Shown here piece by piece: positions 19,113 to 54,548 of a stretch of 64,000 nucleotides of DNA (position 1 is the stretch's first letter; each line of letters starts with the position of its first letter). The position numbers and the translations under genes were made by a program. Under the pieces are notes generated by a model that saw nothing but the letters and a program-made list of their open reading frames with translations, searched no databases and was not told the DNA's origin. Origin of the DNA: Thalia democratica. Its lineage: Eukaryota. The DNA lies in assembly GCA_965202585.1 (NCBI GenBank), contig OZ241828.1:37448001-37512000 (forward strand). The letters run 5' to 3'.

Positions 19113-19316
19113 AAGCCACCGATTACTCAAATCTCAAGCCGAAAGCACAAATATGCAGGCGCCCTGCTGTCTATCACCCCGTTCTGGATAAAAAAGTCTC
19201 CCCTTTTCATCAAAATTGCGGGCGCCAACGTGTTGCGCGACCATTGTGTCCCCTTCTTACGTGAAAAGATTGATCGCTCCGTTGAAAATTGTGCATAACG
19301 CAAAAACGCCATTTTG
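19113..19316 (-). promoter_or_regulatory. Paralogous cis-regulatory module A (upstream copy)
   Basis: The reverse complement shares ordered blocks with 54376-54548: CAAAATGGCGTT, CGATCAATCTT, AAGGGG(A/G)CACAATGG, TGGCGCCCGCA and GGCGCCTGC. Confidence 0.7.
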
Positions 19317-22300
19317 TCGCAAATGATGCACTTTTTTATAATTGATAGTTTCGATTTAGCAAAAAAACATTATGCAAATTCGTACAAATTGTAAAAAGCA
19401 GTGGGTAATAAAATATTGTTTTATAATGAGAAGAAAAAAAAAACTTTAAGCACAACTCTCACTTCCTTAAGATTGTGCAATTTTATAGGCCTTATACAAA
19501 TGAAATTGACCATTGAAACAAATAATGGCCTGATATTGATAAAGTAACATATGTTTTAATTGACTGTGACTGCCCAAATTTTTATCCTGCTTACGGAGAT
19601 TGATAGAAACAAAAGTTTTTTTTAGAAAATTACAACAAATACACTATTATGTGGTTAAATGGATTGTTTTAGAACATTTTACAGTTTGAATTAAATTATA
19701 ACATAAGTACTAGTAAAAAATTTTACAAATGCTAACTAGTTTTAATTTTGATAATAAATTTTTTCCTTAAAAAATACAAAGGTTTTTATTATGTTGACAA
19801 AAGTAACTTATAATCGAATTCAACACTTTTAAACAAAATTGTTCAGTAAATTATCACTAAAAACATTAAGTTTTAAAGTTGATAAATATTTAAATGGTTT
19901 AAGTTAAGTATAGCGTATTTTAGCTGGCGGATTGTATACATAAGTGAGTATTCTTATCTTTGAAATTGTCATATCTTTTTGTATTTTCGCGACAATAGAT
20001 CTGCTATTGACCATTAAGCAACGTTAAAAAAAAAAATTAACCCTGGGCGCTTTTCAACTCACCGCTTTGTTTACAGTTTGTTAATAAACGACGCTTTAAG
20101 CTTTTAATTTTTCCACTTAATTTCATTTAAAGTTTGAAGAAAAACTAGACAGTCGTTGCTATTAAATTATTGAAGCTGTTTGCAAAAGCTCATTTTGTTT
20201 TAAAGCAACAGGCAGGCAGTGCAAAGTACTTGAGCGATTGATTGCATCTTAAACACTTTTAAAGTGACCTAAATCCCAGCGAGAGGCACGAGATACGCTC
20301 GGCGAAATATGCACAAACTTCCCAGCTTTCCGATGCTTATCAACGCCGATTATGGAGCTTTAAAACGGGATGAATTATAGATAATTTCCGATAAGCCAAC
20401 ACCGCTTAGCACAGAAATTAAACACTTTTGAACGAGCGCTTTGTGTTTTGATTCGGATACAGTTTGTGTTTTGTGTGATTGCACACAAGGCTAAAAATAG
20501 ACTTAGATGATTAGTATAGAATAAAATATAGCTTGCTTTTGAAAAAAACGTACAATGTTTTGATATAGATTTGAAAGCAAAAAATTTTAGTTGTTAATTT
20601 AGTTTATCATACTTTATTTTTTTTTTGTTCTTTTGATATAATACAAATGTATAATACTTAATAGAATTTTTGGTAAAATTAAGCCAAAATTTTTAAACCG
20701 TCTAAAATGAGTTGGATATTGATTTACTTGTGTTGTAAAGCTAGTCATAGAACTTATACTACTCAAAAATTAAACGTTTATTTGTTTATTGATTTAACAT
20801 ACAACTTATAACTTAAGTTATTTATTAAAAGTTAAAACTTAACTTTTGAAGTAGTTAATATTAAATGAACACTTATAAAAAAGTTGTGTTATAACACTGT
20901 AATATATAACATTTTACTAAAACTTAATAAAGTACTTTTAGTACAATAATTAACAAAACAAAACTGCACTAAACATCTTCATTAACTTTAACTTACCACT
21001 GGCTGTTTAATTAACAAAGCCTGAACAATCTTATTTGATGTAAAATTTATTTTACCAACCAGTTCAAGCATGAAGGGAAAATAAATATTTGTTCCGATGC
21101 ACTACACTAGTCATACAAATATTCTGTGGGAGCTCATGAAACAAAGCACCTTTAATTGGCAAGTCAATACGACCGGATCAAATTCAACTCGAACTTCTAA
21201 AAATAGAGAAGGGAAATTAAAATAACCCGGTCAATTGGCAGCGAGTTAGAAGGGCTCAGTGGAAGCTACGAAAAACTCATCCAAATATTTACCGTAGACG
21301 AAATCATGACGTAATATTTGATTTCGAAGGACAAAAGTTCATCTTGCCTGGGTGCTACAAAAACAAACTTGAGTTGATGGTTGTCTGTGCTTTGTTTTTG
21401 TTTTCTAATTGCGAGTAGGTAGCTTTGCAGCGCCAAAAATCATTAAAGTTTTGCTTGAAAGTTATTGCCCATGATTGTAATGTTTATTAAACAAGTAATT
21501 ATAGTTAGAGTTAATTATTTGATTTAAAGTATTCTTTTTTCATATTAAAGTACTCATAGCTTACTTTTAGTGCAATTTTGAAATTTGTCATCAGTTTATA
21601 TCTAATTTAATTCAGAACTATTCAAATAAGTTGCGACTGTGGATAGGTAATTGATCCACAATAATCACTTTAGAAAAGTAATAAAATAGCCAGTTACACT
21701 TAATTATGGCATGTTGATAAAACGACGTTATTAGTTGTATAAACATATACCTTCACGCTTTTATAATTACTTTTTAAGTGAAAGTCTATTATGGTTGTTG
21801 TTGTTAAGAAGCTTAACTTTGTTTAAATGCGTGGTGTTGTATGAAGTCGTGAGAAAATTTTAAAGTTTAAAAAGACAACAATGCTATCTTGATGTCAGTG
21901 AAACATGTTAAAAGTAACTTTGGTTCTGTTGTATTTAGCAGCTTTTAAAAGTGTAATATATTTTGAATATAACGCTGAGTTGTGTGTCTAAAACTACAAG
22001 CCACTTAGCGCTTTGTGAAACTACAATGCTAGCTGAAAAAGTACAAAAGAATCTAAAATAAAATAAAATCAGTTTCATTTATAACACAGCTTGTTTGTTG
22101 CTAAATACAAAACTTTCTTGCAACTCAACTTAAACCAACTTAAACTCAATACAACTGATACTGTGGTGGGTTCTTAAAGGTGTTTCTTTAATTCCTTTTA
22201 TTGTTACAAAGTTTATCTAAAGTTCAAATCTTATTTTGATTGTGTCGAAATGTAGTAGAATTCGTTGGTACACCGCTAGTGCTTACGTAACAATAGACTT

Positions 22301-22699
22301 GTAAAAAAAATATTGAAAATGCTAGAAAGTTGAATTAGTTAAAGCTGTATTTTTTTTAATAAACTTTTTTTTTGTTATAGTTAAAATACTAAAAACAAGT
22401 AAAACAAATACTTGATCACAAACCTATTCATATAAAGTTTCCTGAAATCGTTATTGTTGTATGAAAATTAGAAGCTTTATTTTGTAAAGTTAAAGCTTGT
22501 ATAGACGATAAAAAGTATGATACTTTTTACATCTTAAGTAAATTAATCGATTATACTCCAAAGCTTAACAAAACTTGGTGAAGTAAACACATTTACGCTT
22601 TGTTATTATTAATTTATCAGCATATATTTTTTTTAGTCTTACACAAAATTGCAGTCACGCTTACGTTAAAAAGTTATAATTACAAAAGACACCGAGTTT

Positions 22700-23446
22700 G
22701 AAAACAAGCGATTTGTTTCATCAAAAGTCGCACTTAAAACGCTTCATATCGCCAAGATAAAGCAGTCATGAAAAATATATTATGACTCCGACTTGTTTTG
22801 TGCAAGTTAACGCAAAGAGCCAACATCAAACGGCCGAGTTGAGTTTTTAATAAATTTAATCGCACGTATCTTTTTGAAAAATCAATTCATATTTTTTATC
22901 TTAACTTCTCCCGGTAAACAGCAACAGCAGCAGCGGCAGACCGTGTTTTCGTTAGAAACACCACTAGAGCGTCCAAAAAAAATTACGAAACAGTTGCACC
23001 AGTGGCACTTCAAACAATTATCAGATCGCAATCTAAACAACCAGCGCACTAAAAATAAGCGACTTCTAACAGACAGCGAGAGGCCCCTTCTTACACCGGA
23101 GATAATTATTCACGCGATTTGTGAGAAATCAAAGCGTGCAAAAGTGGGAGGCACGTCCGGCCGGTCAAAAGTGCTTATTCGTAAACTCTGCTTGCAACCC
23201 TTGAAAAGTTGATTTCAATTGGCAGCGTAAACACAAAAATGCTTTCAACTGGCCGCGAGTCGAACCGCGCGCACGGTAGCTCGCCGGCCGAGCCCCCGAG
23301 GCGATAGTGGACGCTCCGGTGTGTGAGAATCACGGGAGAGACCACCAGTGAGCTGTTTGTTGCACACATTTGTCCTTTTATGCGTTTGTTTCAAAGGCTG
23401 CCCGCACCGGCGTCTTACGCTCCGGCGGAACACAATCGAAACGGTC
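22700..23446 (+). promoter_or_regulatory. Candidate distal promoter or non-coding first exon of the GATA gene
   Basis: CpG-rich island 3 kb upstream of the start codon, with GATA sites (AGATAA near 22755 and 23100) and a possible donor GTAAGA at 23447. Confidence 0.3.
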
Positions 23447-24419
23447 GTAAGAGCTTACGATATTTCATGCATCGGGTAGAAAAAGTTTAAACAAAGTTTA
23501 AAGTGATGGGGTCGCGGAGTTAAAAGTTTAAGTTATTAATGTGTTTTTGTTAGTAGAACTCTTCAACGGACTAAGTATTTTTTTTTGAAAAATACTTTTA
23601 ATGTAACTTCTAGCAAGTGTTGCGAGAAGTTATGGCTTGGTTGAATACTTTTTAAGGTTTATTTTTCCGACTTGACTTTTTGCTAATAGTTAAGTGGTTG
23701 CATATATAATGATTTTGTTCTAAATTTTAAAATATTTTTAACCTTTAAGATATTGTGAATAGTTGGCTAGTTTAAAAAATATATAAGCTTAAGAGTAAAA
23801 ATAAACATTAAAAACATATAATTTGTTAAATAAACAAACACAATTATCTAAAACTTTTTAGTAAACCTACTTATAGTAAACTTAAATCTAGTAAACAGAA
23901 TTTTAGATAAACTTAAAAACTTTAATTTTTTAAGCTGTTGAACTTTTGTAGTGTTAAGTTGCTTATCTAATAATTTATCAAAGAAATTAAATTACCTAAT
24001 AAAAAATATAGTTCAACAATTAAATTATAAATTCTTTTTGTACAGTATTGTAATTTATTTTAGTGAAAGTTTTCATTTTTCAAATAATTAAAATTAAAAC
24101 AGCTTAAAAAATTAAAGTTTCCTTTTAGTATATTTATCAATAAATTGTTTACGGTATCACAAGCAGATTATCTTGTTTGTAGGTTAGTTATCAAGCATAT
24201 TCATTCAAAATTAAGTATATATTTATACAAAAAGAAACAAAATGCTATTTGGAGTGTAATTGTTCAGAGTGTAGTTTAAATTGGTCGAGTTTAAAACAAA
24301 TCACAAGACGTTGATTATATTAGAGGAAAAGTATTAGTTTGAATAAGCATTTGGAAAACAGTTTACTTGTTGCTATTTCGAAAAAAAAATCATACAGGCT
24401 TTAACGTTCGAATCACCAC

Positions 24420-24612
24420 AGTTTCAATTACTCGTACAAGCAACCTACAAGCCTTGCCTTAAAACCCAAAACGCATTCGGATCTCAAAACTCGAGTTCGG
24501 TCATCGCAAAGTTTTCCCGGAGATCTCACAAGATGCGCGGAAGAGCAGCGTGTGCATGAAGCGAGAGAGGCGAGGAGAGGAAGGCGGAAGGCGAAGGTGG
24601 CACTTGAGCGAG
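24420..24612 (+). other. Candidate second non-coding 5' exon of the GATA gene
   Basis: GC- and purine-rich island ending at a strong donor GAG|GTGAGC (24613). The 5' boundary is a guess. Confidence 0.35.
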
Positions 24613-25599
24613 GTGAGCAGTACAAAGCATTACGCGCAGGGTCGATGGCGCACAAGTTGTTTGCAAATACTCCAAACAGAACTTGTCAGAAGTGAGTTGA
24701 AGAGTCGCAGCGGATGCAGAAAAAAGTTTTCAGGGTCTTGAGAAGTTTAGTATGGTTTGTAAAAAGTTAAAAACAAAGGAAATAAGTGTGAGCTTTGGAA
24801 ATAAGGAAAAAGCGAGGGAAAAATTTTAGCTAATTAGGTTCATCGATGTGGACAAAATGTTAGGAATAAAAAAGTTAAAATAAAGTTTTAGTACAAAAGC
24901 TTTAGTAACGTTTGTTTTGGAACCGTAAGAAGCACGCTGATTTTAGGTTAAACGAATTTGAAATGACTTTTTAAGTTAACTTAAGTTTTAGATTTAGCTA
25001 ATTTGTTTAATATATAGAATATATGGTGATAGAAGTAAATTTGTATCAATAAAAGATACCATTGTTGTTTTTAGTAACATTATAACAAACGTTTGAGATT
25101 ATAAGTTTATCTTTGTGTTAGTTTAACAAATAAATTAAGCGTTTTGAAACTATAAAGTTAAAAGAGAAACAGATTTTAAAAATCATTAATGTCTGAGATA
25201 CTTTTGGTTTTGTTTATATTTTTGTTGTAAAAATTACTAAAGTATTTTATATGTGTAGTTATCTTATATTTTATAGTTACATTACTTTTTTTTTGCATCA
25301 AGTTATGCATATCGCTAATGTATATATATTGTTTTCAAAAAACTAACTACGTATGTAAATTGACATAAAGTTGTATTGTGTATTGTTTGGTAGTCCGAAC
25401 ATTACTATTCGAGATCTACACCGAATTAAGTTAACAGCCGTCTACGTAAAAAACTTTCGCATGAAAAATGTCCAAGTGACCCTTGACGATGTTTAATTGC
25501 GCGGTGCCATGTAAAAATACACCGAAAAGTAGGCGATAACAGCAACAAACGGGCTAAACCGTTTAAAACAATCAGTTTTGTAAACAGCTAATCACAAAA

Positions 25600-25800
25600 G
25601 ATTAAGTCGGACGCAGGCCAGCGCGCATTAACAGACATTGTTAGCAGGTTCATCCGATACGCGATTAAAATGCAAACAAATCACTTTTTCTTTCGCCGTT
25701 CGACGCACAAAATGGCCGCCGCCACTTAAGTATCAAGTTTCCGCGCACACCAATCAGATAAGGCGCGCACCGGGCAAGATGTGTTGAGAGAAAACAGAAT
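25600..25800 (+). promoter_or_regulatory. Proximal regulatory/promoter island of the GATA gene
   Basis: CpG-rich, with a YY1-type CAAAATGGCCGCC (25708-25720) and an overlapping CCAAT/GATA element, CCAATCAGATAAGG (about 25750-25763). Confidence 0.4.
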
Positions 25801-26032
25801 AAATGCGCTCATGCCGACTATTAATTCAAAGCCAATTTCAAATGTACGGTGCGTAAGCAAGTTAAGGAGATTATGTGTGTGTGAGTACAAGAAATACTTT
25901 GAGTATCAGTTGAATTGCAAGAAAAAATTCTCACAGTGGTAATTTAAGGCTTAGCAAACTCGATAGTGAAATACTTTATTAAAATTAAAAATAATTTAAA
26001 GCAGACTTTATAAACAAGCAAAAAAAGTCGCG

Positions 26033-26291
26033 ATGATTCCAAGCAGGGACAACTCGAACCGCTGGTTCCAGACCAACGGGATCGGGTCCAACCACCACGT
26101 CAATGCGGACAACTCGGGCTTCTACCCCAGTAGCTATGCCAACGCGCACCTGGGCACCGGGGCGTGGGACGGGCACGGGTACCCGGGTCCGAAGATGGAC
26201 GCCAGCGTGGAAACTCTGGAGTACTTCCAGCAGATGGCAGCAGACCAGCAGAACTCGTCGTTTCCGCTCAACCCGTTTCAAATGTATCCAG
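26033..26291 (+). CDS. GATA1/2/3: GATA1/2/3-class transcription factor, coding exon 1
   Basis: GC-rich ORF MIPSRDNSNRWFQ...PFQMYP. A phase-1 donor GTTTGT at 26292 joins in frame to exon 2. Confidence 0.8.
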
Positions 26292-28405
26292 GTTTGTTTG
26301 CAGATTTGTTTTAAAAAATGTTTTTTGTTTAGTTTATTAATTAATCTTAAGTATAAGTTAAAATATTTTAAGGACATGATTATTTTGCACGCGTGAAACA
26401 ATCGATTTATTATTTTACCGAGCGGAATAAACTTATCTGTAAAGTCTTAATTAAAACATTAGCTACATGTGAATTTAAAAACTTGTGAATGTTCTATTAA
26501 AGTATATTAAAAAAGCTATAAAATCTTGTCAATCAACAGATAATGAATAACTTTACTATGAGTTAAAACAACATTAAAATGTGATCTCCAAAAATGTTTA
26601 TTTACATTTCGTTTTGAGGGATCGGTGTTATTTATACTCATATAGAATATTAGAGAATAAAAGTATTTATGCTAAAATTACCACAAAACTAAAATAAAAG
26701 TTTTCTCAGTTATCATTAATTATTAAATGCAAAGGTTCTAACCTTAGTAATACTCTTTACCATTTCAGCTTACAAGCTTCCAAAGTTTTTCGTAACTCGA
26801 ATCGCAATTAAACATCAATTAATCAAAGCTATTTGTGTTAAAGCTGATTAAAATCTCATCGCAGTGCAATTAGGGCAAGTGTGAAACCCCAACAATCGCC
26901 GCATTTTGTTTATTTGGAAACGGAAGTCGCTTCCAAATAGAAAAATGACCTTTCGTCACTTTCAGTTCTTTTTTTAGCGCAAACAGTATCAATTATTCAA
27001 GTTTTCTTCTTCTTCTTGCTTATTGTCCATTGCCTGGCGTTTTCAACTTCGTGTAACATAAACATGCATCGCGTTTTTCTCTGATTTCAAAATAATAACC
27101 GCTGAAAAGTATTGTGTTGCTGTTTAAAGCTGGATGTGTGTCATCTTTCCTGCGTAAACTCCTCTATTATCTATTTATTGTCAGAATACTTTCTGTGCAG
27201 TTGTTGATATTGTGGTAATGTTTAAAAACTGAACTATTGTTTAAATAAAATTAATTCGTTAAGTTCGTTTTAGTTTGCATCAAGCTACCGAACGTTACGT
27301 GTGGTTTTGTTTTCATTCTATCATTAAAAATTCTAAAGATAGAGTAACAGGCTTGAATAACGTATTAAGAATAATTAAAAACGTACTTAGATGCTTATCA
27401 AAATACAAATTTTGATTGCCTTGTTATAAATTGAAAAGGATAACAAAAATGTAAAAAAATTTATGAAAGTAAAAAAAAACTTATTGTTTTGAATTTTTTT
27501 TGTTTCTTGAATATTTGCTTTTCTAATATAACATACGAGGTAATAGTAGTAAATTTAAGTTTTATTTAGTAAATATATTTAAAAACGAACAGATTATATA
27601 TGGAAATTGTTTGTATTGCTACCACCTTTATATTTAAAATAAACGACAAATTTTAACACTCTTGTTTTACTGAAATAGTTTACTAAGTTCTTGAAAATTG
27701 AAAAGGTATTCTTATTAACTTTGCAAAATAACTACCTATAAAACTTCTATCAAAACGACCATAAAAGTACATATGTTTATACTACACAGCATCATTTTTT
27801 AAACATTTTGCTAGTATTTAAATACTTCAAAAAATAAGTACTTGAAACTTTTTTAAACGATCAACTAATACATTAATAGAGTAGTTAGCCAAAATATAAA
27901 ACATAACTACTAAATTTTACGCAAAAAAACTTAACAGTAAATAGTTTTTATTTTTAAAACTTAGTTTAAATTTCATTTTTTTTTTTATGACCATTACTTT
28001 CTAAATTGAAATGAGTAAACACCTACTAATCTAGACAATATACTTATAACAACTTCAAAAGCTTATTTTAAAAATACATACTTAACTTTTTTTTAACTTG
28101 CAATATAAATACGTTTAAGTTTATCCTGAAGCTTAAATCAATTTGAAGATTATAACTTGTTGTTGTAAGATTATATTGATCCATATTGATATGGAAATCA
28201 AGACACTAACATGTTTTTACAGAGTTCTTTAAACATCTAAAAACAAAATACAAATTACTTCTGACGCAATCGTTTAAAATTTTTAGCTACCAACTTCAAA
28301 AAAGATATTAAAACATATTTTTCTGACAAATGATACATCTGATACTAATCCTTGGTTTTTGACGTATAAATTTTATAAAGTTTAGACAAGTTTAAGATAA
28401 AATTT

Positions 28406-28506
28406 GCGAGGGACGCCTATGAAAGCCGCATATTGTAGAAAATTGGTGAAAATCTCTTATCGACACAAAATAAGCGAGAAAATGGTGATAATTTTCATTC
28501 TACTTT
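28406..28506 (+). promoter_or_regulatory. Paralogous module D (intron-1 copy)
   Basis: Blocks GGGAC..CCTA, TATCGA-N6-ATAAGC and TCTACTTT recur inverted and in order at 50972-51080. Confidence 0.45.
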
Positions 28507-29402
28507 ATATCTTGTTACTGATAAACGCAGTAAATTGGTCAGAAATTGGGGGTAAGATATTGTTTTGACTCTGTGTTTAAGTTTGAAGATTTTTTATTTT
28601 TCATTTAGAATGTTTACAATTGCTCTTGTTTATTGAGAAAAGTTTAATTAAACAATTTCAGAAATGATTTTAACACTATGAAACAAAATTGTCCATTTAT
28701 GTACTTGATTACAGGAAAAAAAAATTACCATTGTTTTAGAACTCAACTAAAACAAAGGATACAAGTTAATGAAATATAAAAACTTTATATTGTTCATAAT
28801 TCAGAAATAACATACGTTATAAACAATATACAAAAATATATAGTTTTGACACGATAGGTTAATGCATAAGCTTATACAATATTTTTGATAAAAAGAAAGA
28901 TCTGAACAATTAGTTTAATTACCGACTTAAGTTGCTATACTTATAATACTTTTCTTTCAGTATAAGCATGTCTTTTTTAAGCTTCAAATGAGTAGTCAGC
29001 AACATAGGATTTGTGTTAATATGAAAAAATTAAATTAAAAATCGGAATTATGGCAAGATTTATACCTGGCTAAAAAAAATACTGTTTGAAAACGCAAACT
29101 CACAAAAAAGCAACATTGTGAAAGTTGTGAATTAAGAGCTAGAGACAGGTGTTTACTTAATCGCTTGCCACATGCCGCGTAAAAAACTTTGCACTTTCCT
29201 TACGACGATCAGGCCCTCAGGCTCCCAGCTAGTAGAAAAAAAAGAAACTTTCTGTTTATCTTCGCTTTGCAGCATAATTGACTCGGCTTTGTAAAGCCGC
29301 CTGATCTGGCTTTTGCTTGGCATTATACACATATACAAGAAAGGAACGAGAAATTATTTTCATAATATCGCTAACAACTTTGTTAGTTTGTTTAACACAC
29401 AT

Positions 29403-29505
29403 GCTAATTTTCATCTAATGCATGCCACCAAACGAGATTTCGGGTGGAGATAGGCGTCGCGGCAAATGTCGCTTCAATTTTACACTCTCGGTCAACACGC
29501 TGAGA
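29403..29505 (+). promoter_or_regulatory. Paralogous module C (intron-1 copy)
   Basis: Blocks GCTAATTT(T)C(A/G)TCTAATG, CACCAAA, GTGGAGATAGGC, GG(C/A)AAATG, AATTT and ACAC..GAGA recur inverted at 50640-50735. Confidence 0.65.
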
Positions 29506-30560
29506 CGGATAAAAGAGAAAGCACCAGATATGTTGTGCACCTCCACACAGCATTATGTTCAGGAGAGACATGAGTGCTGGTTTGCTTACAATATAATTCA
29601 TTAAGAGCCGAAAGACGGTGCTAGACTTTGTTTCGTTGCTGAGTCGCTAATGCGTTTTTGTTCAGCAAAGAAATTATTGATTTGCTCCGAAGACCTTTCG
29701 CATAATAGAGGCCTCTTTGCAGTTCTGGTGAAAACGCATCAGGCGAGCAAATGGTCCTTCATGCTCTAACGTATCAAGGAGCAGGAAAAAAAACTGTTAA
29801 TTTAAAATTTAGTCATGCTTTTTGTCCTGTAGAGCCTTCGTTAAAATCTGTTGCATGCAGTTTCTTAATTAAAAGCCAAATGCATGGAACTGCAGTTTAC
29901 TTCAGTTCCAAATGTCAGTCGGTTTTAAAAGAAGAGGACTACTTTTTTGTTTCAACAAGACGGAATGGAAAAGCTGTGACAGATTGTCTTTAGATAGGAA
30001 AGATAACGTCATTTAATTTCTCTTATCGACAGAAGTACTAATGCCGGGGTAACAAGTTTCATATTTCTGTAACAATAAGTAACTTACTTACTACTATGTA
30101 TTAGCAAACTAAACACACATGACATTATAGTCGTAAAAACTCTGAATTGCTTTATGTTTCTTTATACAAATGTTGAAATTTTGTACTTGCTTTAATTATA
30201 TAACGCAAACTGACCGAAACATGCACAAACAACAAAAAGAACAAACAAACTAAAACCATAAAAAGTAACATAGAAAAAATAATATTGTTAACATTAACAT
30301 TTATAAGTTAAAAAAACCTTGAAAGAAACCAGAAAAGGGTGGCGCGTGTGTGAAAAAGCTCAACGCAATAAACCTCGAATGAAACGAGAACGCGTGAGTG
30401 TTTTAATTAAGACTTCCCTTTTGTACACAAAGCTGTTGAGCCCGAATCAATCGTTTCAGATCAAAGCGGCTCGGCCCTGAAACCAGCCAGTTGTTTATTT
30501 TCGTTTCTGCGCACAGTCATCGCTTTCTAAGGTGACTAAGTCGCTTGCTGCAGCTCTAAA

Positions 30561-30729
30561 TTGAAGCGATTGGTCACACCGAAAGTCGTTAGGCGAAAGA
30601 CTCTCATCGAAAATTAACTCGTTAGCCAAATCACCTCTCGTTTCTTAATAAAGGTGGGCATGAAATGTTTGAGCGAAAAAGCCATTGAAGTTCTTCATCA
30701 CCTTTCAATTTGTCAATTTGTGTAAACAA
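30561..30729 (+). promoter_or_regulatory. Paralogous module B (intron-1 copy), 169-bp near-identical core
   Basis: 165/169 nt identical to the reverse complement of 50193-50361. Contains GATTGG (CCAAT) and a Fox-type TGTAAACAA. Confidence 0.9.
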
Positions 30730-30883
30730 ACAGATTGCTGGCTTAGCGCTTATCTAATTAAATAGTCATGAGAATCGGCACTTGATGCTGTAGCTGATGA
30801 AAGTTTTAATCATAAAACAGATTTAGCTTGAAGATTACCGTAACATGACAGCCAGATTGAAATCTATTCTGTTTTATCCTCTC

Positions 30884-30916
30884 TATATAAAAAAGTTGTG
30901 CTTTCGCTTGTCAGTT
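30884..30916 (+). promoter_or_regulatory. Candidate internal TATA-Inr core promoter in GATA intron 1
   Basis: TATATAAA starts at 30884 and TCAGTT has its A at 30913, a spacing of 29 nt (canonical). Confidence 0.45.
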
Positions 30917-31266
30917 ACTTGCACGAGAACCAATACACACCTTAAGTATTTAAATTGCTTTAATGACGAGCTTTAAGGTGTAAAAAGCAATTTTAGTTTT
31001 TCAATACATTGTAAACCCGTTATTATTATTTTAAATTCTTTTTTCACATTGTTTTTTTTAAATATATTCATGCTGAGTACTTAAAACACTGCTTATTGCT
31101 ATTTAGAGTAAAATTCTTAAAACCGAAGTTAGTAACTCAGAAAAAAAGGAAAACAGAAACCTGTTAAGAACTTAATTTATAAATTTTTTACAAGTCTTCA
31201 TTATCTAGTAATATAATTATCTTATGAGTAAATAAACTGAATTAAAAACCAATACTTTTTTTTCAG

Positions 31267-32049
31267 CACGGAGGCTGCACCACCAAGTCCACTCGCACGC
31301 CACCTCGCCAGCCGCCAACCCGGGGCTTTCCCTTTTCTCGTCGTCGGCCAAAAACGGCGTTTTCCACCCGCACCTGCCCGCGGCCGCCCACCACCAGTTC
31401 AACGCCAACCACTCGTGGACCAACAAGCACCGGGGGCTGTACGACTTCAACCTGCCCACTTCCGCCCAGCAGCAGCAGGTCAAGGTCGAGACCACTTCCT
31501 CCGTCTCGTCCAAGTCGGACACGAGCGTGGCGGCGTGCAAGCCCCAAGCGCAAGAGGGGGACACGACCGCGGCGGCGGCGGAAAAGTCAGCGTTCGGGGA
31601 AATAACCAGCTGCGAGAACGGCGCGTCGCAGCAGCTCACCTCCGAGCAGCAGCAGATGACCTTTCACTTCCCGACGCCCCCGAACGAGGACGGGGAAGTC
31701 CCTTCAGCCAACTCGACCCTCGCCCAGCAGGAGAAGGCCGCCAAGCCGCAGGCGTCCAACGAGCCCAACATCATACTCAACGGCGCCTCTATTACGTCAT
31801 ACAACGACCAGGAGTTGGCGGGCAGCAACAAGCTTTCAACCTACCCTTCCGGAGGGACCAACGGAGAGAGCAAGAGCAGCATGAGCTCGGGGCCGACGGC
31901 TTACAGCAGCGCGATGCACACGCAGAGCTTCGCGCAGCAGCAGCAGGACATCAACGAGGTGGCGAAGTACGCGGCTTCCGCCAACAGCCTGTCGACGAGC
32001 CAGTACAGCAACAGCACTCTGGCGAAGAAGAAGAGCAGAACTAACGCGT
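31267..32049 (+). CDS. GATA1/2/3: GATA1/2/3-class transcription factor, coding exon 2
   Basis: Acceptor TTTTTTTTCAG (31266). The 783-nt open frame includes TFHFPTPP (compare the GATA2/3 FTFPPTPP motif) and ends KKKSRTNA. Donor GTGAGT at 32050. Confidence 0.92.
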
Positions 32050-32467
32050 GTGAGTTGTACATGTTGAAATGATGAATTGGAATATTTATGTAGTTGACAG
32101 CGGCTAATTCATAAGAAATTGTACGAATGTGTTTTGCTTAAATTATGCATTCGTTTTATACTTTTTTTAAAATAATAACAATAAAAGATTACGAAAATTA
32201 TTAAAGTACAACTTTTTAAATGTTTTATTGTTTGTAAGCATTAAAGTTTGTTTAGAATAACATGTTATAACGTTGTACTAAAAAAAAACCTAGAAATATA
32301 AGTTTTTATTTTCAATACTTAAATTATATAATAATTAAATAACTGAAAACACCAAAACTAGCTGAACTATTACATGTAAAATACCGCAGCCGAGTTTTAT
32401 GTAAAAGCGGCCTGCGCGTACATTTACTAAACAAACAACCAGTTTGACTTTAAATTAACACGAACAG

Positions 32468-32610
32468 CCCGCGAGTGCATCAACTGCGGGGCGACCACCA
32501 CGCCGCTGTGGCGCAGGGACGGGACCGGGCACTACCTGTGCAACGCGTGCGGTCTCTACCACAAGATGAACGGGCAGAACAGACCGCTGGTCAAGCCGAA
32601 GAAGCGGCTT
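32468..32610 (+). CDS. GATA1/2/3: GATA N-terminal zinc-finger exon
   Basis: [47 protein letters not shown]. Acceptor AACAG (32467), donor GTGAGT (32611). Confidence 0.97.
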
Positions 32611-32827: not shown

Positions 32828-32953
32828 TCGGCTGCGAGGAGGGCGGGCACCAGCTGCAGCAACTGCTCCACCACCCATACGACGCTGTGGAGGCGCAACT
32901 CGAGCGGCGACCCGGTGTGCAACGCGTGCGGACTTTACTTCAAGCTTCACGGG
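32828..32953 (+). CDS. GATA1/2/3: GATA C-terminal zinc-finger exon
   Basis: [42 protein letters not shown]. It is 126 nt and phase 0-0, as in vertebrate GATA2/3. The linker SAARRAGT is GATA1/2/3-type. Confidence 0.97.
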
Positions 32954-32999
32954 GTTGGTAAACACATATATGAGAATAAGCAAGTATGCGCACGGATGT

Positions 33000-34330: not shown

Positions 34331-34537
34331 TTAAGTAGTTTTGAATTAGAAAACTAATATAAGTTCTTGCTTAATTGTATTACGTTGTGTATGACACAAA
34401 CTTTTAATTACTCTAAAAAGCTAAAGTACTGAACAAACCTGTTTACAAGACTTTCACTGCAAGCTAAAAAACGTTTAACAATCTCACAGCGCCGCTAACA
34501 ATGACCACAGTAGTAACAGCTAAAATCTCCTTAACAG

Positions 34538-34903
34538 GTGAACAGGCCGCTGACGATGAAGAAGGACGGCATCCAGACGAGGAACAGGAAGATCAGCACC
34601 AAGATCAAGAAGTCCGGGGTGTGCAGGGACGCGAGGTACGACCAGACGTTCAGGTTCCTCGACAACCCCACCGGCTTCGCCAACCTGCAGTCCTACTCCC
34701 AGTCGTTCAACCCGATGCAGTTCAACCCGCACCAGCACCAGCTGGGCCACCAGGGCTTCGGCCACCACGTCAACCACCACTCCATGTTCCCGCCGCCCGG
34801 CCACCACGTCGGCCACCCGGGCATGACACCCGCGCACGCCCACCACACGTCCAACACGCTGGCGCTGGGAATCGGGGCGCACTCCGGCATGGCGATCGGG
34901 TGA
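34538..34903 (+). CDS. GATA1/2/3: GATA basic tail and His/Gln-rich C-terminal exon (to in-frame TGA; or to 34899 if spliced)
   Basis: Acceptor TTAACAG (34537). Reads VNRPLTMKKDGIQTRNRKISTKIKK...GMAIG*. The TGA at 34901-34903 lies inside a GTGAGT donor at 34900. Confidence 0.93.
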   Translation: MNRPLTMKKDGIQTRNRKISTKIKKSGVCRDARYDQTFRFLDNPTGFANLQSYSQSFNPMQFNPHQHQLGHQGFGHHVNHHSMFPPPGHHVGHPGMTPAHAHHTSNTLALGIGAHSGMAIG

Positions 34904-42931: not shown

Positions 42932-43012
42932 TTGTTTATTGAACGACAAAAAAGCGCTCAAAAAGTTTGGTTTAAGGACCTTGACTACAAAAAAAAGCTT
43001 TCGGTTATCGAG
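42932..43012 (+). repeat. Dispersed repeat family R1, fragment
   Basis: TTGTTTATTGAACGACAAAAAAGCGCTCAAAAAGTTTGGTTTAAGGACC...TTCGGTTATCGAG matches the reverse complement of the 10.1-kb copy. Confidence 0.75.
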
Positions 43013-43319
43013 ATAACACTTTAATTTTATCGTATTTATGTAATTATAAGTTTTTAGAAATTTCTTTAAATTTGAACTGATTGTTATTCCTCAGTATATA
43101 CAAAATTGTATACTTTTTTTTTTGATTATTTTCATACATTGCTTTGAAAACACTTAGAAAATTAAGACTTTTATTTTTTACTAACATAATGTTAATGTAA
43201 ACAAATCACTATTGTTTATATATTATTATTTTTAATTAACCTATCATAAAAATATAAAATGTTTAAATTTTCAGTGTCTAATTAAAAATTCATTATCAAA
43301 AAAAAACACAAAGTCTGTT

Positions 43320-45660: not shown

Positions 45661-48483
45661 GTCGTTAGCTAGACTGCTTTCGGATGTCTTGGCCGGTCAC
45701 CCCTGCTTGTTTCATCTCTTGAATCCGTCAAAAAAAAAATCGAGTAAAAATTTTAAACTCGATGACAACTCGTTTGATCGGCTGACTTCTTGCTGAGGCT
45801 CACAACAAACAATCGTGAAATCGTCGAGCGTCTGACGACACCAAGCGGATAGAAAAAAAGTTTTTCATTCTGTTTTTTTAGAAAACACAAAAAAGAAACA
45901 GGTTCGTTTATTCTTATGGATAATGTTTAAATAAGTTTATAAAATTTCAAAAATTAACAATATAAAATGAATTGAACTTGTAACAGGTATTTAAGTAATT
46001 TCGTACAAATGTTGCGTAATTTGTCTCCTTAAACGCATGAGTTTTTACTTATTTTTTTGCAAGTATTACATAACATTAAACATTAAAAATTTTTTCTATT
46101 AAATATACATCTTCTTTAAGTTTTGTATAGTTATATAATGAATTTTTTTTTACTAAGTTGATTTTAGTAAAATTTAAATAAATAAAAAACTAAAACACAA
46201 TTTTTTATTTTATTTTTACTTTATACTTATAATACCTAAAATATAGTTCTGTATATAAAAACTTCAAACTCTTATCTTAAGTATGGTTTAAAAAATTATA
46301 TTCTAAACACTTTTGTAAAGTCTTTCTAGTACTTTTTAACAACCAGCCAACAAAATAAAAGTTCATTTCGTTTGCAATAATTTTTAAGATATACAAATTC
46401 ACTGCAAAAATATTTTTATATAGTTTAATTGGCTTTAAACTATAAAAAAGTACTTTTTAAAAAATAATAAAAGGTTGTAACAGTACAAGTTGTTTTTAAA
46501 ATTAAAAAATATTCAATTAGTTTAAAATAAACTAATATTTGTAGATATTGTTATCAAAATATCATTTCTATTAAAAAAAATCAGTCGAAAGTACCCATTA
46601 TAAATATTTTTAATGATCGAAGAGATCACCATTTTAGACAACTATTTATGCGTTTACACTACTACATTGCTGAAGCTTCAGTACTTTGAAAACTGTTTGA
46701 AAACCCGAATGAACTTGTATGAATGAAGCTTGAGAATTGTAATCTGATATATTTGATAAACTTAAACGGAAGCTGGTATTGTAATACGGTTCCAAATTAT
46801 GTCATTTGGTTTGTATTTTGCTTTGTTAAATGATCATAACTGCTACAACTACTTCATTCATAAATGTCATTTAAGCTGAAAATGTACCAGAAACAGATAC
46901 TTTATTTTGAGTTAAATGACAAGCTAAGTTTTTAATCAAAAAAAAAAAAACTTTTATTATTTTTACAATATTAAGTGTAAGTTTTTAAACATTGGCAAAT
47001 GTCATTTAAATTGAAAGCAAACTGTTTACTATAATTTGCCTAATTATTTAGTACTTCTAATATTGAAAAAAAGTCTTAACTTTTTTTTTCTCTATTACTT
47101 AAAGTACATTATAAAAGTATAGAAAGAAACTTTATAAAGTGTAAATGCTAAAAAAACATTTGTTTCAACTTTTAAACAAGTTCATTATATTTATTTTAAA
47201 GAAAACCGATGATCATACTTTTAAAATCATAAATCAAACTCGTTATCCAATTAAATTTTTCGAAAATTTTAATATAAGCAAATATTTTGAAGTTGTACTG
47301 AATAAGTTTAGAATTATCTTTTTAAGTTTAAAATTTTGTAACCTCTTTTAACTTTTCTTCAGTTGTTAGTACTTAATAAGTAAACTTCGACATTAAAACG
47401 GTTTTATTCAACATAAAAAACAAAACTAAAATTGAACACCCTTCTCTTTACATTTCCCTATTAAAACTGAATTGTTTTTATTCTAATATATGTTTCAATT
47501 AGTTTTTTTAAGCTAACTTGTAGTTTTAAAAGAAGCCTATGAAATTGACAAAGCTACTTAAAAGCTCTCATTTTAAAACTTTTTTAGTTAGTAACTGCTT
47601 TTACATTTAATGATTTCAAACTATGTTAGCTAGACTTCGTTTTGACACTTTAGATAGTCTTTATTTTTAAATTTTTTGTACTTTAAAATGTTGAATGTAT
47701 GATATACAAAATTAATACTTAAATTCATACTGAAATTAAATTTAATTTTACAATAAATTTATGAAAAAAACTGACGTTTTTTAATTAATATTTATTTAAA
47801 ACTACATTTTAATGAAAACATTGATTTGATTATTAAAATATTAATTTAGTAACAAGCTTTTAAAGCGTTTTTTTAAATTTAGCTTCTTAAAATCTATTAA
47901 ATTTATAAGTTTTGAGTTTAAATAAGCACTAGTTTATGAAAGAAACTTTACTAATATTGTTCACCATCAAAACTTATTTCATAACGAACCTGGTCAAAAT
48001 TACTACTCGTTTATCTTTATTTAGATATATTAAATTTACATAGAATAGTATCTGCATATTTTGTATAGCTTTATTGTAGTCAAGTTTTACAAAAAGTGCT
48101 GAGTATTAACAAAAATTTAGTTGATTTAATAGTAATAATAACTAACATTATAATACATTATATAAAAAAAATTATATAAATTAAATACAATTTAATAGTA
48201 CTACATTTTTGTTGTTTAAAGTCTTAAAAAACTGAATAAAGTCAATGTTTTGAGCATGCGTAAAAATTTTTTAAATTCAAAATGTTACATTTTTGCTTTC
48301 TATATAAATGTTAAAATCTACCTCAGTATTTATATATTTTTTCAAACGTATATTAATTGTTTTGTCGATTAGCTTTTCACAAAATACTTACTTGTACAAA
48401 ATATTTTCACTTTAAAAAAAACTAACTTTTTTTTTATAAATAGTATACAGAAGTGTATTTAAATGTTTTCAATAATAAATACA

Positions 48484-49053
48484 TTACTAAAAATATATAA
48501 CAGAGTGCATTTCATTTTGTTTAAATTTGTTTAAGTACTTTCAAATAGGACTCGTCAGAAATTGTTTCCTACTGGATTGCAATGAATACAAATTAAAATA
48601 AAATTATACTACAGTTTAAAGTTTTAAGATATAAAATGACGTAATAATCAAAAGTTTAAAATTAAATAAGTTCTAATGCTAAACAAATTTGGTATACTAA
48701 TAAAACTCGGTAGAATTAAAACATTCTAAATAAAGAAGCGATAAAAAATTTTTAAATTAAAACTATGCTTAAAAATAATAAATAAAATTTTTTTATCGCT
48801 TCTTTAATTAGAATGTTTTAATTCTACCGAGTTTTATTAGTATACCAAATTTGTTTAGCATTAGAACTTATTTAATTTTAAACTTTTGATTATTACGTCA
48901 TTTTATATCTTAAAACTTTAAACTGTAGTATAATTTTATTTCAATTTGTATTCATTGCAATCCAGTAGGAAACAATTTCTGACGAGTCCTATTTGAAAGT
49001 ACTTAAATAAATTTAAACAAAATGAAATGCACTCTGTTATATATTTTTAGTAA
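48484..49053. repeat. 570-bp near-perfect palindrome (fold-back); possibly a TA-flanked MITE
   Basis: Left arm 48484-48753 and right arm 48784-49053 with a 30-nt spacer and about 4 differences by eye. Reads TA|CTAAAAAT...ATTTTTAG|TA at the ends. Confidence 0.92.
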
Positions 49054-50192
49054 GTTATGCACCGGAAAAAAGCTGTTCAAATAAATACATTATAAGACGT
49101 TTTGTTTCGTAAACTTGTGAATATATGTTATTTGCATCATACTTTATCGGTTATATATACAAAAGTTTAACACTTAATTTATACTAATATTTTTTTTTTT
49201 GATTATAAAGCTAAATTATTTTTAAATAAAATGGAAATCAAGCCAAAACATAAAGTTACAAAGATCAAGTTTAACAAAAGTTATACACTGTTCTAACAAA
49301 ACTTTATAAATTTCATACACTCAGTAAAGCTGCTTTAACATAATTTCAAAGATAAATTATCAGCTATTGATATATTAAAGGATGTAATTGCTTAACTTTC
49401 GGATGTTTGACAGCACCATTTTATTCAGGTGAGATGTTTATTTTACTTCGAATAGTTTTGTTATTTAAATCCTTTAAGTTAAAAAGCTAACAACTTTGTT
49501 TGCTTTGTATTAGCAACGTATTAATACGTGCTATTGTTCAGTTTGTTACTTGAACCTAGTAAAGATAGGTTTATTCGTGCTTTTGCCTCGAGTTAATTTG
49601 ATTTTTATTGTGAAACTACTTTAACCAAGTTTAAATTTATTTCTTTATAACAGGTAATTTACTAGCTGATTGCTTTTAGTGCACGATTTAATTTAGTTTT
49701 CACCGTAATTAGACTGCAAACATCAAAGTTATCAAGCTGAAAACGCATGTATTTATATTAAAGCAATAAACCCATTGCAAACTTTATGTGGACTAAATAT
49801 GCAAAAGGTATTAAAAGTCAACATTAAAAGCACTTAACGTTCGGTGTGCTTTGAATTTGTTAATGTTAATCTTCCGACTCAATATACAGCCGCGCGCCGA
49901 GATAACACAGTGATCGCATTTGATAACGAAACATGTTAGCATTAAATTTAATAAATATACACACAAATGTGTATCAGAAACGCACATGTTTTATTGAAAC
50001 ACATCAAGCTCATCATTTCACCCTGCTAAGCAAGTTATCGAAAGCAGATATTGTTCCGATGCGAATCTAATCTTCTTCATCTTTTTTATTGCTGAGATCA
50101 AAGCGATGGTGAGATGCTGTGATTAAAAGCTTAATCGCGGGAGGGGATCTCGAATAAAAACACAGTTTCGCCGGACTTCTGAAACATTTTGC

Positions 50193-50361
50193 TTGTTTAC
50201 ACAAATTGACAAATTGAAAGGTGATGAAGAACTTCAATGGCTTTTTTGCTCAAACATTTCATGCCCACCTTTAATAAGAAAAGAGAGGTGATTTGGCTAA
50301 CGAGTTAATTTTCGATGAGAGTCTTTCGCCTAACGACTTGCGGTGTGACCAATCGCTTCAA
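50193..50361 (-). promoter_or_regulatory. Paralogous module B' (downstream inverted copy)
   Basis: The reverse complement is 165/169 identical to 30561-30729. Confidence 0.9.
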
Positions 50362-50639
50362 GTGTTGTGTACACGAGTTGTAGAATCAAAACAAAACAAA
50401 GAAAAAAATGTGTGCTTTTGAACAAGCTTTTTAAATCCTGTCAAAATTATATTAAGCTTACATCAAAGTTTATACGCAAAAGCTAAAGTTAAGTTTCTTA
50501 GTTTCATTTTTAAAAATACACAAGAAAATTTACAAAAGCAAATTTGCTTTAATTGTTTGTTTATTAAATAGTATTTAATGTTTCATGTATATATATATAT
50601 ATTCGTCTCGCTATACTATGATTTCTCATATTGTTCGTT

Positions 50640-50735
50640 TCTCTGTGTGAATAGGAACATTAAATTCAAAAGCCATTTTCCATAATGCCTATCTCCACTG
50701 GTATCTTTTGGTGAAAATCATTAGACGAAATTAGC
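50640..50735 (-). promoter_or_regulatory. Paralogous module C' (downstream inverted copy)
   Basis: Ordered block match to 29403-29505, including GCCTATCTCCAC (50687-50698), the reverse complement of 29444-29455. Confidence 0.65.
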
Positions 50736-50971
50736 CGACGTGTAAAAATAAATAACACGGTTTTTATCAATAACATTGAAATGATACGCTTATTTATTCT
50801 GCCGTGAGTGTTCAGCGGTCGACAAATGCGCTGCAGAACGGATATTTTTAGAAGCCTGTGGCCTCAGAATAAACAAATTTAAATGTTAGCGGTACGAATA
50901 ACATGCACAGAAATTACCTATAACCGTTCGATTTTTTCTTCCCAGATTAGCAACTGAACTTCATTCTTAAG

Positions 50972-51080
50972 AAAGTAGATTATTGTTGAAATTAAGCTGC
51001 TTATCGTATTTCGATATTGATCACGAAACTTACCTCTAAGGTAATAACATGAAAATCATTAAGATTAGGTTGTCCCGGCG
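50972..51080 (-). promoter_or_regulatory. Paralogous module D' (downstream inverted copy)
   Basis: AAAGTAGA (50972-79), GCTTAT-N6-TCGATA (50999-51016) and TAGG..GTCCC (to 51076) mirror 28406-28506. Confidence 0.45.
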
Positions 51081-54000
51081 TTAAGAAATAACTTTTGTTG
51101 CTTTATTTATAGACGTGAATATTTTTGGTATCAAGTTATTTAATTTGAGTATATCATGATTGTTTTATTGCCATTAGAAAGTACTTTGCTAAAATTATAA
51201 ATACTCTGCATAAAAAACTGAAAAAAAAATTGAAAACTTTGTTTTATAAAGTTTAAGAAATTTATCTATAGCTTAAAGTTATTATAGTTTGTTATTAAAT
51301 TGTTTTAATGTTAAAATAATGACTTCAACGTATTTTTGTTTTTTACAAACTGTTTTAAATATAATCTTGTATAGTTTTTAAATTTGTTTTCAAACATAAT
51401 CTTTGCAGATTAGTATGCTTAACTAAAAGCGTTAATCGTTTGAAGTGAAAAGAACAGTTTAATTGATCTAAACAACAGTATAATGAATCATCGCTTTTCA
51501 AATAAATCCTGTTAATTGCTACGATAAACTTTATTAGTAATGACATCTTAAGTCAAACATTAAAACAAAACAGATTAAAGTAGAAGCTATTTATAATATC
51601 CTGTTGATGAATAGAACTTATATAAAAATAAAAGTATAATAAGCTTTGTAAATACAAATTTATCTTTAAAACTAGATTCGTTTTTACAGTGGCTTATTGC
51701 TAACGTTAAGTCGGGTCAATTTTTATTATGTATTGTTTGTTATTTGTTGTCTGTTTTAATAAGTAAAAAATTATTACTTATCAAAAAAATATTTAACGTA
51801 TACGTTGATTTGTACATACAATTTAAAAAAAAACTGAAACTGTTTAAAAAAAGTAGCTTAAACAAAAAAAATCTTTTTTATTATGAATAAGTAGAAAATT
51901 AAAGTCAAATAAGTTCACCTTTATTTCGACTGTTATACCTTAAAGTTAGTTTGAATTTTTAGTTAATTTATTATTCAAAACTATGTTAAAATCTTAAAAC
52001 TAGTTTTAAAACCAGTAAATTTACAATATTAGTACTTTTATGACTTGTTCTAGATTTATTTAAAATATTTGTTCACCAATATTTAAAATAAAATATTTCA
52101 ATAGAGACTTTAATATCTAATACAATAGCAAAGAATTTTGTTAAATAATTTATACACTTAGTAGAAACAGTTAAAAACGAATATTAGTTTACTTTTTCAG
52201 TGCAAAAATGTTTCAAAAACAAAAACAAAACTAAGATGTTCTATAACATGGCTTTCTTTAAAAATATCTCTGTTAAGATATTTTAAGTTAAATTTTAAAA
52301 GTTTGAAAAGTATTTTATTTTTTCACAACTACTTTAAACTTATTTTTGAAAACTTATAGATCCTTCCAACTATAAGCTCGATGTGATCTTATCAAAAAGG
52401 TTTTTGTGTGTTTAGTTGTCATAGCGGCTACTTAAAAGCGAACATTTGCTATCGCATCGCAAAACTGATTTTTTAAACTTAAATTACAATTTCTAACAAG
52501 CGTTGAACAGGCGGATTCGAACTTTTATAATTAAACAATTATTTTGTTGCTTTGGTAGTTGTTTTTTATGTAAAATTCTTTGTGATAGAAAAGTTTAAAA
52601 ACGGTTTTTTACCTACATATTTTTTAAAGTTTATGTAATTTGTTTGTTATTATGTCAATTTGTTTTTAACAGATGTTAATTAAATTTTATAAATTAATTA
52701 AAAATTTGAAAACTTTACTTTTTTTATTATTAAACATTATTAATATTTTTTTGTTAGTTTCAATTGTCACTTTTTATTTTGCATTACTTTTTGTTTAAAC
52801 ATTTATTTTATTGCACTTATACGTAACATTTTGTTATCTAAAACAGTCTATATAATTTTTTTTTTGAATTTTAACTTAAAACCTTTACTTTTAAGACGAA
52901 CTTTTATACTTTAATCTAAAAGTAATAACATTTTTATCTTGCTAAAACATTTATAGTTTAGCGTTTGATAAATACAATTCAACGTATATAAAACTTAAGT
53001 CACAGTTTGTAAGTTATAATTTTAAGTAAACTAGCTTTTAAACACTTGTTTTTTTATCCTCATTTTTACATAACTTTTTATAAAGACTATACAAAACTGT
53101 TTATTTTAGTTTTTGTAGTTTTAGTAAAAGAACATGCGGTTTCTTAATTATACTAATACTTCTATTGTTTTTATGGCTTCAGTTAATGAAACAAGTCATT
53201 TGTAATCTTTTACATGATATTTTAATTTAAAAAAAAGTTTAAGGGTAAAACTACTTTTTTTTTTCATTTAGCTGTAATACAAAAGAATTAAGTATTTTTT
53301 AATTAAACTTTTTAACTTAAAAAAAACTACACAAAAAACAACAAAAAATTAACACACTTTTAAACGTAAAGTTTTTTAATAGGATATATATATATATAAA
53401 GCCTAAAGTCATACTCATATAGTTTTTACAATTTCTCAGCTAAAGATTAAAATCTCGTTTTGTTAAAGCTACTTTAAAAATTATAATTATAATATCTTAA
53501 AACACAATATATATATATATAAAATAAGGTTAATGTTCAAACTTAAACACCTTCTACTGAGCCCACTTGAAGGGCTTTTAAATAATTTATTGAAATGGCG
53601 ATTTTAAAAATCCTGGTACATATGTTTCATAAAGCTTTAATTTTTTATAAAGCTTTAATCATCAGCCAGTTATATATATATATATGTACATACATATACA
53701 AAAATAACAGAAATTCTTCGGTATCGTAATCAGCTCTTAAAACTTAAAACAAAATTCTTTAAAAAAACTGTTAAATCTTCTATTAAAGTTATAAAAAATA
53801 AAACTTTTAGTCTTTATATTAACGTTCTAGCTACTTTATTTATAAGTTGTAAATACTAAAGACCAGTGTAAGTAAAGATTTGTAGTGTTATTGAATAATA
53901 ATAGTAATAAAAAAGAATTAAGTAAAAATTTATATCCACTTATTTTATGCGATACTTTTTTATAATTGATGTTCTTGATATATTGATTTGAAGTTGTTCA

Positions 54001-54375
54001 TTCAGTTTAGCATTTTACAGTTTAAAAAACGGTTGATTTTCATTTTATTTCCAGTCTGAACTGTTTCTGTAAAAGTTATATGTGATTAATTACATGGTCC
54101 ATTTGAATTAAATGATAACTACATGTTTTATTGATAGTCACAGTCAATTTACAAAAGCTCTAATCATTCAATTACCCTAACACCGTATTAAAATAATTTA
54201 CAAACAAGGGACTAGTAAAATACCAACACAATATTTATCTTGCACCATTTAAGCTAAGGTAAAAAAAAAACAATATTTTTAAGCTTGTCAAGTCTAAGCC
54301 AAAGCCTTCTTAACTGATTTTGTTTTTTAAAACTAATTAGAGCTTTTTCCAACCAGTTTAGTTTCAGAATTAGAG

Positions 54376-54548
54376 CAAAATGGCGTTACACGATTTGCTC
54401 AAGAAACTCTCGCGGGACGATCAATCTTCACAAGTGAAAAGGGGGCACAATGGACCAACAAAAACTGGCGCCCGCATTTTCATGCCTGAAAATTTCGACA
54501 GACAAAAAGGCGCCTGCGCACCCGCTGAGTTGTGAGCAACGAGTGGTT
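54376..54548 (+). promoter_or_regulatory. Paralogous module A' (downstream copy, inverted relative to A)
   Basis: Blocks at 54376-87, 54418-28, 54439-53, 54466-76 and 54509-17 match the reverse complements of 19305-16, 19266-76, 19241-55, 19217-27 and 19155-63. Confidence 0.7.

Follow-up and report, generated by a model that had tools for sequence, protein, structure and literature searches.

We analysed a 64-kb window of the genome of Thalia democratica (GenBank assembly GCA_965202585.1, contig OZ241828.1, positions 37,448,001 to 37,512,000 of the forward strand), a stretch with no gaps and a GC content of 28.5%. It carries a single GATA gene, which encodes two zinc fingers and lies on the + strand. 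Three short non-coding modules at the left of this gene or within its first intron, here designated A, C and B, have paralogues 15–20 kb downstream of it (A′, C′ and B′), which lie in the opposite orientation and whose order is the mirror image of that on the left. The gene and the modules are arranged as follows, in window coordinates.

19155–19316, + strand: A, an island of GC-rich non-coding DNA; the inferred GATA start codon follows 6.7 kb downstream
26033–26291, + strand: inferred coding exon 1, an ATG-initiated open reading frame (ORF) with a GC content of 0.585, whose CAG/GTTTGT donor at 26292 joins the acceptor at 31267 in frame
29353–29523, + strand: C, a non-coding island inside intron 1 of the GATA gene
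30561–30737, + strand: B, a sharp-edged non-coding element of 177 nt located in intron 1, with exon 2 beginning 530 nt further on
31267–32072 (3′ end approximate), + strand: exon 2, encoding the N-terminal region, an open frame
32476–32550, + strand: N-terminal zinc finger, with the pattern CX2CX17CX2C (Pfam GATA, 5.3e-16)
32855–32929, + strand: C-terminal zinc finger (Pfam GATA, 5.2e-17)
34535–34903, + strand: last coding exon, an open frame from the basic tail NRPLTMKK..., a conserved post-finger motif, to the stop codon
50185–50361, − strand: B′, a near-identical inverted copy of B, 19.4 kb from B
50619–50785, − strand: C′, the inverted paralogue of C and its reciprocal best match
54376–54517, − strand: A′, paralogous to A and inverted, about 19.5 kb past the GATA stop codon

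Because plain +1/−1 blastn was swamped by AT-rich low-complexity matches, we adopted a composition-aware scheme in which Smith-Waterman local alignments were scored with a log-odds matrix fitted to the base composition of the window, and every module was compared, in both orientations, with the whole window divided into 400-nt chunks. The modules A, C and B and their counterparts A′, C′ and B′ are reciprocal top matches in the window, always on opposite strands, with scan scores of 68 bits (A/A′), 44 bits (C/C′) and 245 bits (B/B′) against 23–29 bits for the runner-up anywhere in the window. The window-wide null has its maximum at about 28 bits, and with optimised boundaries C/C′ reaches 64 bits and B/B′ up to 248 bits. 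Significance was assessed by shuffling the right-hand partner 2000 times with its dinucleotide composition preserved; no shuffle attained the observed score for any of the three pairs (z=18.6 for A/A′, 25.4 for C/C′ and 116 for B/B′). The main local alignment of A with A′ (19213–19316 versus 54480–54376) has 74 of 107 columns identical (69%) and is accompanied by an extra colinear block (19155–19175 versus 54517–54497). For C/C′ (29353–29523 versus 50785–50619) the figure is 114 of 172 columns (66%); the pair is real, but wider than first given. B and B′ (30561–30737 versus 50361–50185) agree at 170 of 177 positions, including the 165 of 169 that had already been noted for their core.

A preliminary description of this locus had listed four mirrored pairs. 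Shuffling upholds A, B and C but dismisses the fourth, D (28406–28506) with D′ (50972–51080), which scores 13.8 bits, the null median, and is matched or bettered by 261 of 2000 shuffles (P=0.13), as expected of a chance alignment. When 12–46 kb was tiled against 46–64 kb, and the whole window compared with itself, no other colinear pair rose above the direct-orientation control (maximum 25.6 bits), in agreement with the statement that the spacers no longer align. Three further candidates (22013–22074/54369–54312, 26426–26487/53105–53043 and 31626–31644/50122–50104) score 22–24 bits and were set aside as lying within the null range. A likeness between 31.2–32.0 kb and 60.8–62.6 kb is compositional, its right side being an eIF2B-epsilon-like gene. 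The compression of the right-hand copy was also borne out: the three modules span 4.4 kb there and 11.6 kb on the left.

All modules had been assigned to the 5′ side of the GATA gene. This holds for A, which is truly upstream, but C and B fall in intron 1, which we infer to occupy 26292–31266, following coding exon 1 at 26033–26291. Exon 2 starts at the acceptor at 31267, and it is at this point that the contigs of relatives begin to align. These relatives are known from a protein search with exon 2, in which only four ORF fragments matched (69–88% identity), on ocean-metagenome contigs of about 1 kb; their alignments begin at 31248 or 31264, cover exon 2 only and end short of B. At the nucleotide level, such contigs are 72% and 87% identical to 31248–32186 of the window, and their flanking intron cannot be aligned to it, which makes this evolutionary distance a useful one at which to compare module conservation. 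The ancestral GATA layout comprises three exons, encoding zinc finger 1, zinc finger 2 and a 3′ conserved domain (PMC2383905), and the same layout is found here, with the two fingers on separate exons and the NRPLTMKK tail on a third (34535). GATA-3 is the top solved relative of each finger; the fingers score only slightly better against solved GATA-3 and GATA-1 (152 and 149 bits) than against GATA-4 (137 bits), which is a ranking and not a phylogeny.

The right-hand copy is devoid of recognizable coding sequence. Using tblastn with the translations of all five GATA exons, we detected no GATA coding remnant in 36000–60500 (best E=1.9), and a second GATA gene or pseudogene on that side was therefore rejected, as no finger or exon remnants occur at 36–60.5 kb. 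The earlier observation that the right copy is free of exon and zinc-finger remnants was thus correct, as was its corollary that the coding and promoter parts are missing from that copy. The modules themselves are also non-coding: each of the six frames of B is interrupted by stop codons, the lengths of the indels in A and C are not divisible by three, and no Pfam or tblastn coding signal was obtained for the modules. Folding of B as RNA is no better than that of shuffles on either strand (z of −0.6 and −0.5). Searches against Rfam returned nothing at gathering score over the window, nothing at E≤1 around B, and no tRNAs. Several short strings are common to both members of a pair, namely CATTGT and GCCATTTT in A and A′, AGATAG in C and C′, and CCAAT, TCACACC and GTAAACA in B and B′; the motif assignments that we presume for these strings serve as leads only. 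Neither a 22-mer of B nor a two-block pattern of A had a match among JGI metagenome contigs, and an exact look-up of ten module-overlapping ORFs gave none.

To gauge copy number and the integrity of the assembly, we mapped Logan contigs onto 49300–55200. They came from four runs: two of the source organism, one filed under a second organism label, and a marine metagenome. Single-copy contig depth over this stretch is about 62–105. The bin that lies wholly in C′ has a depth of 72–108, and the preceding one, made up of AT-rich flank and the initial 60 nt of C′, 448–484. The two bins of B′ show 141–235, which fits two copies with shared 31-mers and at most about five, and the bins of A′ range over 126–429. 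Overall the modules stand at about 1–4 times single-copy depth, whereas depths of 11,000–500,000 (the 10^4–10^5-fold range) are found at true repeats of this stretch, so the modules are low-copy sequences. In each of the four runs, contigs extend over C′ and A′ and into their flanks, and the edge of B′ at 50185 is crossed by contigs from runs X2, X3 and X5. The two runs of one sample differ by about 1.5% over 49300–55200, pointing to high heterozygosity; the run under the second organism label has many variants in common with them and diverges no further than a second haplotype would, so the two labels may denote one species or very close ones.

Three low-copy pairs, each inverted and together reversed in order, are the signature of an inverted segmental duplication, and a single such event is their simplest explanation; three independent events would yield this orientation and order with a probability of about 1/48 ((1/2)^3 × 1/3!). 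B′ belongs to the same event, since it is placed on the expected side and strand, at a distance of only 258 nt from C′. We thus regard an inverted-duplication origin as well supported, with the proviso that continuous homology over the duplicated span was not found: only the three islands align, as would be consistent with great age, and it is from them that the single event is deduced. Our preferred reading, to which we give a probability of roughly one half, is that one old inverted duplication of the 5′/intron-1 region has decayed except at the islands, leaving a right-hand set in mixed condition. A GATA 5′ segment that took in intron 1 and at least 6.7 kb of upstream DNA, and possibly the entire gene, would have been copied, inverted, to the downstream side of the gene. 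Later deletions and mutation would have erased most of this copy, exon 1 and promoter included, reducing 11.6 kb to 4.4 kb, with A′, C′ and B′ as the surviving islands. The duplicated segment held exon 1 and the GC-rich islands at 20–26 kb, none of which has a right-hand partner, so over 60% of the length of the copy would have gone. The data fit equally a tail-to-tail duplication of the whole gene and the insertion of its 5′ part alone downstream. The description of the duplication as ancient, however, does not apply evenly along its length, as B/B′ are 96% identical and the other pairs 66–69%.

This discrepancy sets B and B′ apart. Their cores differ at 4 of 169 positions (2.4%), close to the haplotype difference of about 1.5%, whereas the A and C pairs differ by 31–34%, and the edges of B/B′ are razor sharp. 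The position of B′ places it in the old duplication, which argues against the chance arrival of a new copy, and 96% identity beside 66–69% for pairs of the same event suggests that the two copies have been homogenised. We favour non-crossover gene conversion between the inverted copies, possibly with added constraint, as the process that would have kept them alike; otherwise, very strong constraint would have to act on almost all positions of the two. The preliminary description had considered neither process. Were B and B′ to cross over, exons 2–5 would be inverted and parted from exon 1, making the pair a potential source of structural variation, and for this reason crossover products should be selected against. 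Among the joints listed, which come from the right side only (49300–55200), none is a B–B′ crossover joint.

We then considered which members of the pairs are likely to be under constraint. The modules are islands with a GC content of 0.31–0.48 amid a background of 0.15–0.25. Given that the spacers are unalignable, although 66% identity in AT-rich DNA would score positively, the modules must have diverged more slowly than the spacers, and slower divergence implies that in each pair one copy or both have been constrained. The left-hand modules A, C and B are most likely GATA enhancers or other constrained cis-elements, because these islands have outlasted their spacers and because GC-rich, motif-dense sequence is a cis-regulatory hallmark in an AT-rich genome. 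A′ is probably still constrained as well, as it has retained both motif blocks and GC content: matches between A and A′ are clustered in blocks of 8–12 nt (P of about 0.02–0.03), GC content is 0.48 in A′ and 0.47 in A, and the direction of substitution is symmetric (7 versus 8). Of the six polymorphisms listed in aligned A′, five gather where the copies have diverged, between two blocks of conservation; by strict count, matched columns carry two of the six, where 70% would be expected (P=0.06 for A′, and P=0.05 when C′ is included), figures that are suggestive only. C′, by contrast, would fit a drifting, relaxed copy paired with a constrained C. The proposal that selection kept the right-hand enhancers is accordingly only partly backed: block-wise retention in A′ speaks for it, but the AT-biased decay and even mismatches of C′ do not, and the signals bearing on a possible function of the right-hand set are mixed.

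Several of these observations would also be compatible with a right-hand copy that is non-functional and decaying neutrally, in which case A′ and C′ would remain alignable because their left-hand partners are frozen, halving the divergence, and B′ would have been recently converted by B. We consider this possible, though doubtful. It gains from a series of findings, several of which also weigh against our preferred reading. Mismatches between C and C′ are evenly spread (P=0.47), the GC content of C′ has fallen to 0.31 from the 0.40 of C, strong-to-weak changes outnumbering weak-to-strong ones by 28 to 13 (P=0.03), and polymorphism is not below that of the flanks in either A′ (8 sites in 173 nt) or C′ (4 in 167 nt). 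Only 3 of about 10 left-hand GC islands have a partner, exon 1 and the promoter have none, and the right copy is heavily deleted and has received insertions of high-copy repeats. Two further points count against the preferred reading, in that gene conversion is deduced from the identity contrast alone and the copy number of B is bounded loosely, at about 2–5. What a dead relic explains poorly is the retention in A′ of its GC content, of symmetric substitution and of block-wise identity, and the composite nature of the right-hand cluster at 49.8–51.1 kb, a GC island that includes unique sequence; B′, moreover, requires an additional mechanism. An opposite view is that B and B′ are a maintained, orientation-matched pair serving in tethering, as boundaries or as twin promoters, and that A′ and the 49.8–51.1 kb cluster form a working second enhancer set. 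Concerted evolution would then hold B/B′ at 96%, and the inverted duplication would have built a two-sided regulation of one gene; we judge both parts of this proposal unlikely. In a narrower form, to which we likewise accord little credence, B and B′ would be a functional pair in their own right, as architectural or tethering elements or as promoter/first-exon units bracketing exons 2–5, with A and C as incidental relics; the two sequences would stay identical through the need to bind the same factors. The 96% identity of the 177-nt core, its sharp edges and the inverted placement of the copies 19.4 kb apart around a transcription unit agree with such a role, as do the three strings present in both copies and the donor-like GT/GTAAAC at the + strand end of B, 8 nt beyond which conservation ends. 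On the other hand, B was shown in no RNA run, the motif assignments are presumptive, and gene conversion offers a simpler account.

Two explanations would deny that the pairs stem from a duplication at this locus. Fragments of a transposable-element family might have come to lie on both sides of the gene by chance, and there are indeed real repeat families and a palindrome of 580 nt near B′, and B has sharp edges. This possibility, which the preliminary description had itself raised, is largely refuted and in our estimation very improbable: the modules have the low contig depth given above rather than that of true repeats, none is dispersed in many copies, each has a single partner in the window, neither terminal inverted repeats nor a target-site duplication were seen at the edges of B and B′, and the pairs are colinear in mirror image. 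The same description had named misassembly as a potential flaw, and with heterozygosity of about 1.5% a haplotype or chimeric join could in principle have produced a right-hand copy. The right-hand modules are not an assembly artefact, an explanation that retains scarcely any probability. The identity of 66–69% within A/A′ and C/C′ is far past allelic divergence, so these pairs do not represent haplotypes, and contigs of independent runs cross the right-hand junctions, covering C′ and A′ with their flanks and the 50185 edge of B′.

Repeats in the window are of several kinds. A short element at 53507–53634 has a summed depth of 30,000–500,000 in all three organism runs and is abundant in the marine metagenome too; with TA runs on either side (53509–53522 and 53674–53687), it is probably a very-high-copy repeat resembling miniature inverted-repeat transposable elements, set in a TA microsatellite. 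A dispersed family has at least five copies in the window (9913–10169, 63760–64000 on the − strand, 42932–43012, 55031–55117 and approximately 5601–5900), with a depth of 11,000–16,000 at the copy in 55013–55200. The palindrome near B′ is AT-rich and near-perfect (48479–48754/48783–49058), with arms of 276 nt that are 98% complementary and a spacer of 28 nt; it lies 1.1 kb from B′ and may represent a foldback element or a site that forms hairpins.

Given the unusual layout of this locus, we compared it with known systems of paired or duplicated regulatory elements. Vertebrate duplicated conserved non-coding elements (dCNEs) are described, in the part of PMC2020477 that draws on McEwen et al. 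2006, as deriving from whole-genome duplication and lying beside two retained paralogous genes, and their retention and loss between paralogues have been documented (PMC1896008). The modules resemble dCNEs in being short paralogous non-coding elements, significantly similar within one genome, near a developmental transcription-factor gene and in surroundings that cannot be aligned. They differ in that both sets flank one gene, the only GATA gene in the window, following a local inverted duplication whose second coding copy is gone; cross-species conservation is a defining trait of dCNEs, and the modules, known from one genome, are not assigned to that class. As with shadow enhancers, two cis-elements of shared motif content occur at one locus and could in principle drive overlapping expression, but shadow enhancers are defined by activity, whereas the likeness here is one of sequence alone, and most known cases are not demonstrable paralogues in mirror order.

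Inverted copies are also encountered in the palindromes of sex chromosomes, whose arms are kept alike through arm-to-arm gene conversion. B and B′ are similarly inverted and 96% alike while sequence of the same age has diverged; unlike those arms, however, they form a tract of 177 nt with a spacer of 19.4 kb within a mostly decayed old duplication, and conversion between them is a matter of interpretation. At the Drosophila eve gene, homie and nhomie are paired boundary elements that flank a developmental gene and act in an orientation-dependent manner. In both cases two related elements in a defined relative orientation bracket a transcription-factor gene, but for B/B′ the parallel ends with this resemblance, and any insulator proteins, pairing or loops would be hypothetical. 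A full-text literature search combining 'inverted duplication' with 'shadow enhancer' returned no matching description, which is weak evidence that the arrangement is undescribed. Duplicated non-coding elements as such are known, and what would be new is the local, inverted arrangement on two sides of a single gene.

If the right-hand set were functional, the locus would offer a clean natural example of enhancers that were duplicated while their gene was not, with paralogous cis-elements facing each other across one invertebrate gene of the putative GATA123 class, and the origin of redundant ('shadow') enhancers would be open to direct test. Were that set a dead relic, the locus would still single out the left-hand partners A, C and B as GATA cis-elements under constraint, in a genome that is functionally unannotated. 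B/B′ also offer a compact system in which gene conversion can be set against ultra-strong constraint on non-coding paralogues.

The GATA gene stands in gene-free DNA that extends for roughly 19 kb on one side and 25 kb on the other. The closest genes to the left are ORFs around 6.3–7.1 kb, and the right-hand neighbour is the following.

60791–62710, + strand: an eIF2B-epsilon-like gene with NTP_transferase, LbH_EIF2B and W2 domains

It is followed by a block (62855–63444) that combines inverted repeats with tandem repeats of 16 and 50 nt. GC-rich islands (0.31–0.53) are scattered through the gene-free DNA, against a background GC content of 0.15–0.25. Those that lack a paralogue in the window lie at 20.2, 21.0–21.4, 22.8–23.6, 24.4–24.8 and 25.4–25.8 kb on the left, and at 33.0–34.2, 37.8–38.4, 40.2–41.0, 43.4–44.2, 45.2–45.8 and 49.8–50.18 kb further to the right. 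The last of these adjoins B′ and has no left-hand partner. Around the GATA gene, these unpaired islands are candidate cis-regulatory elements or untranslated exons.

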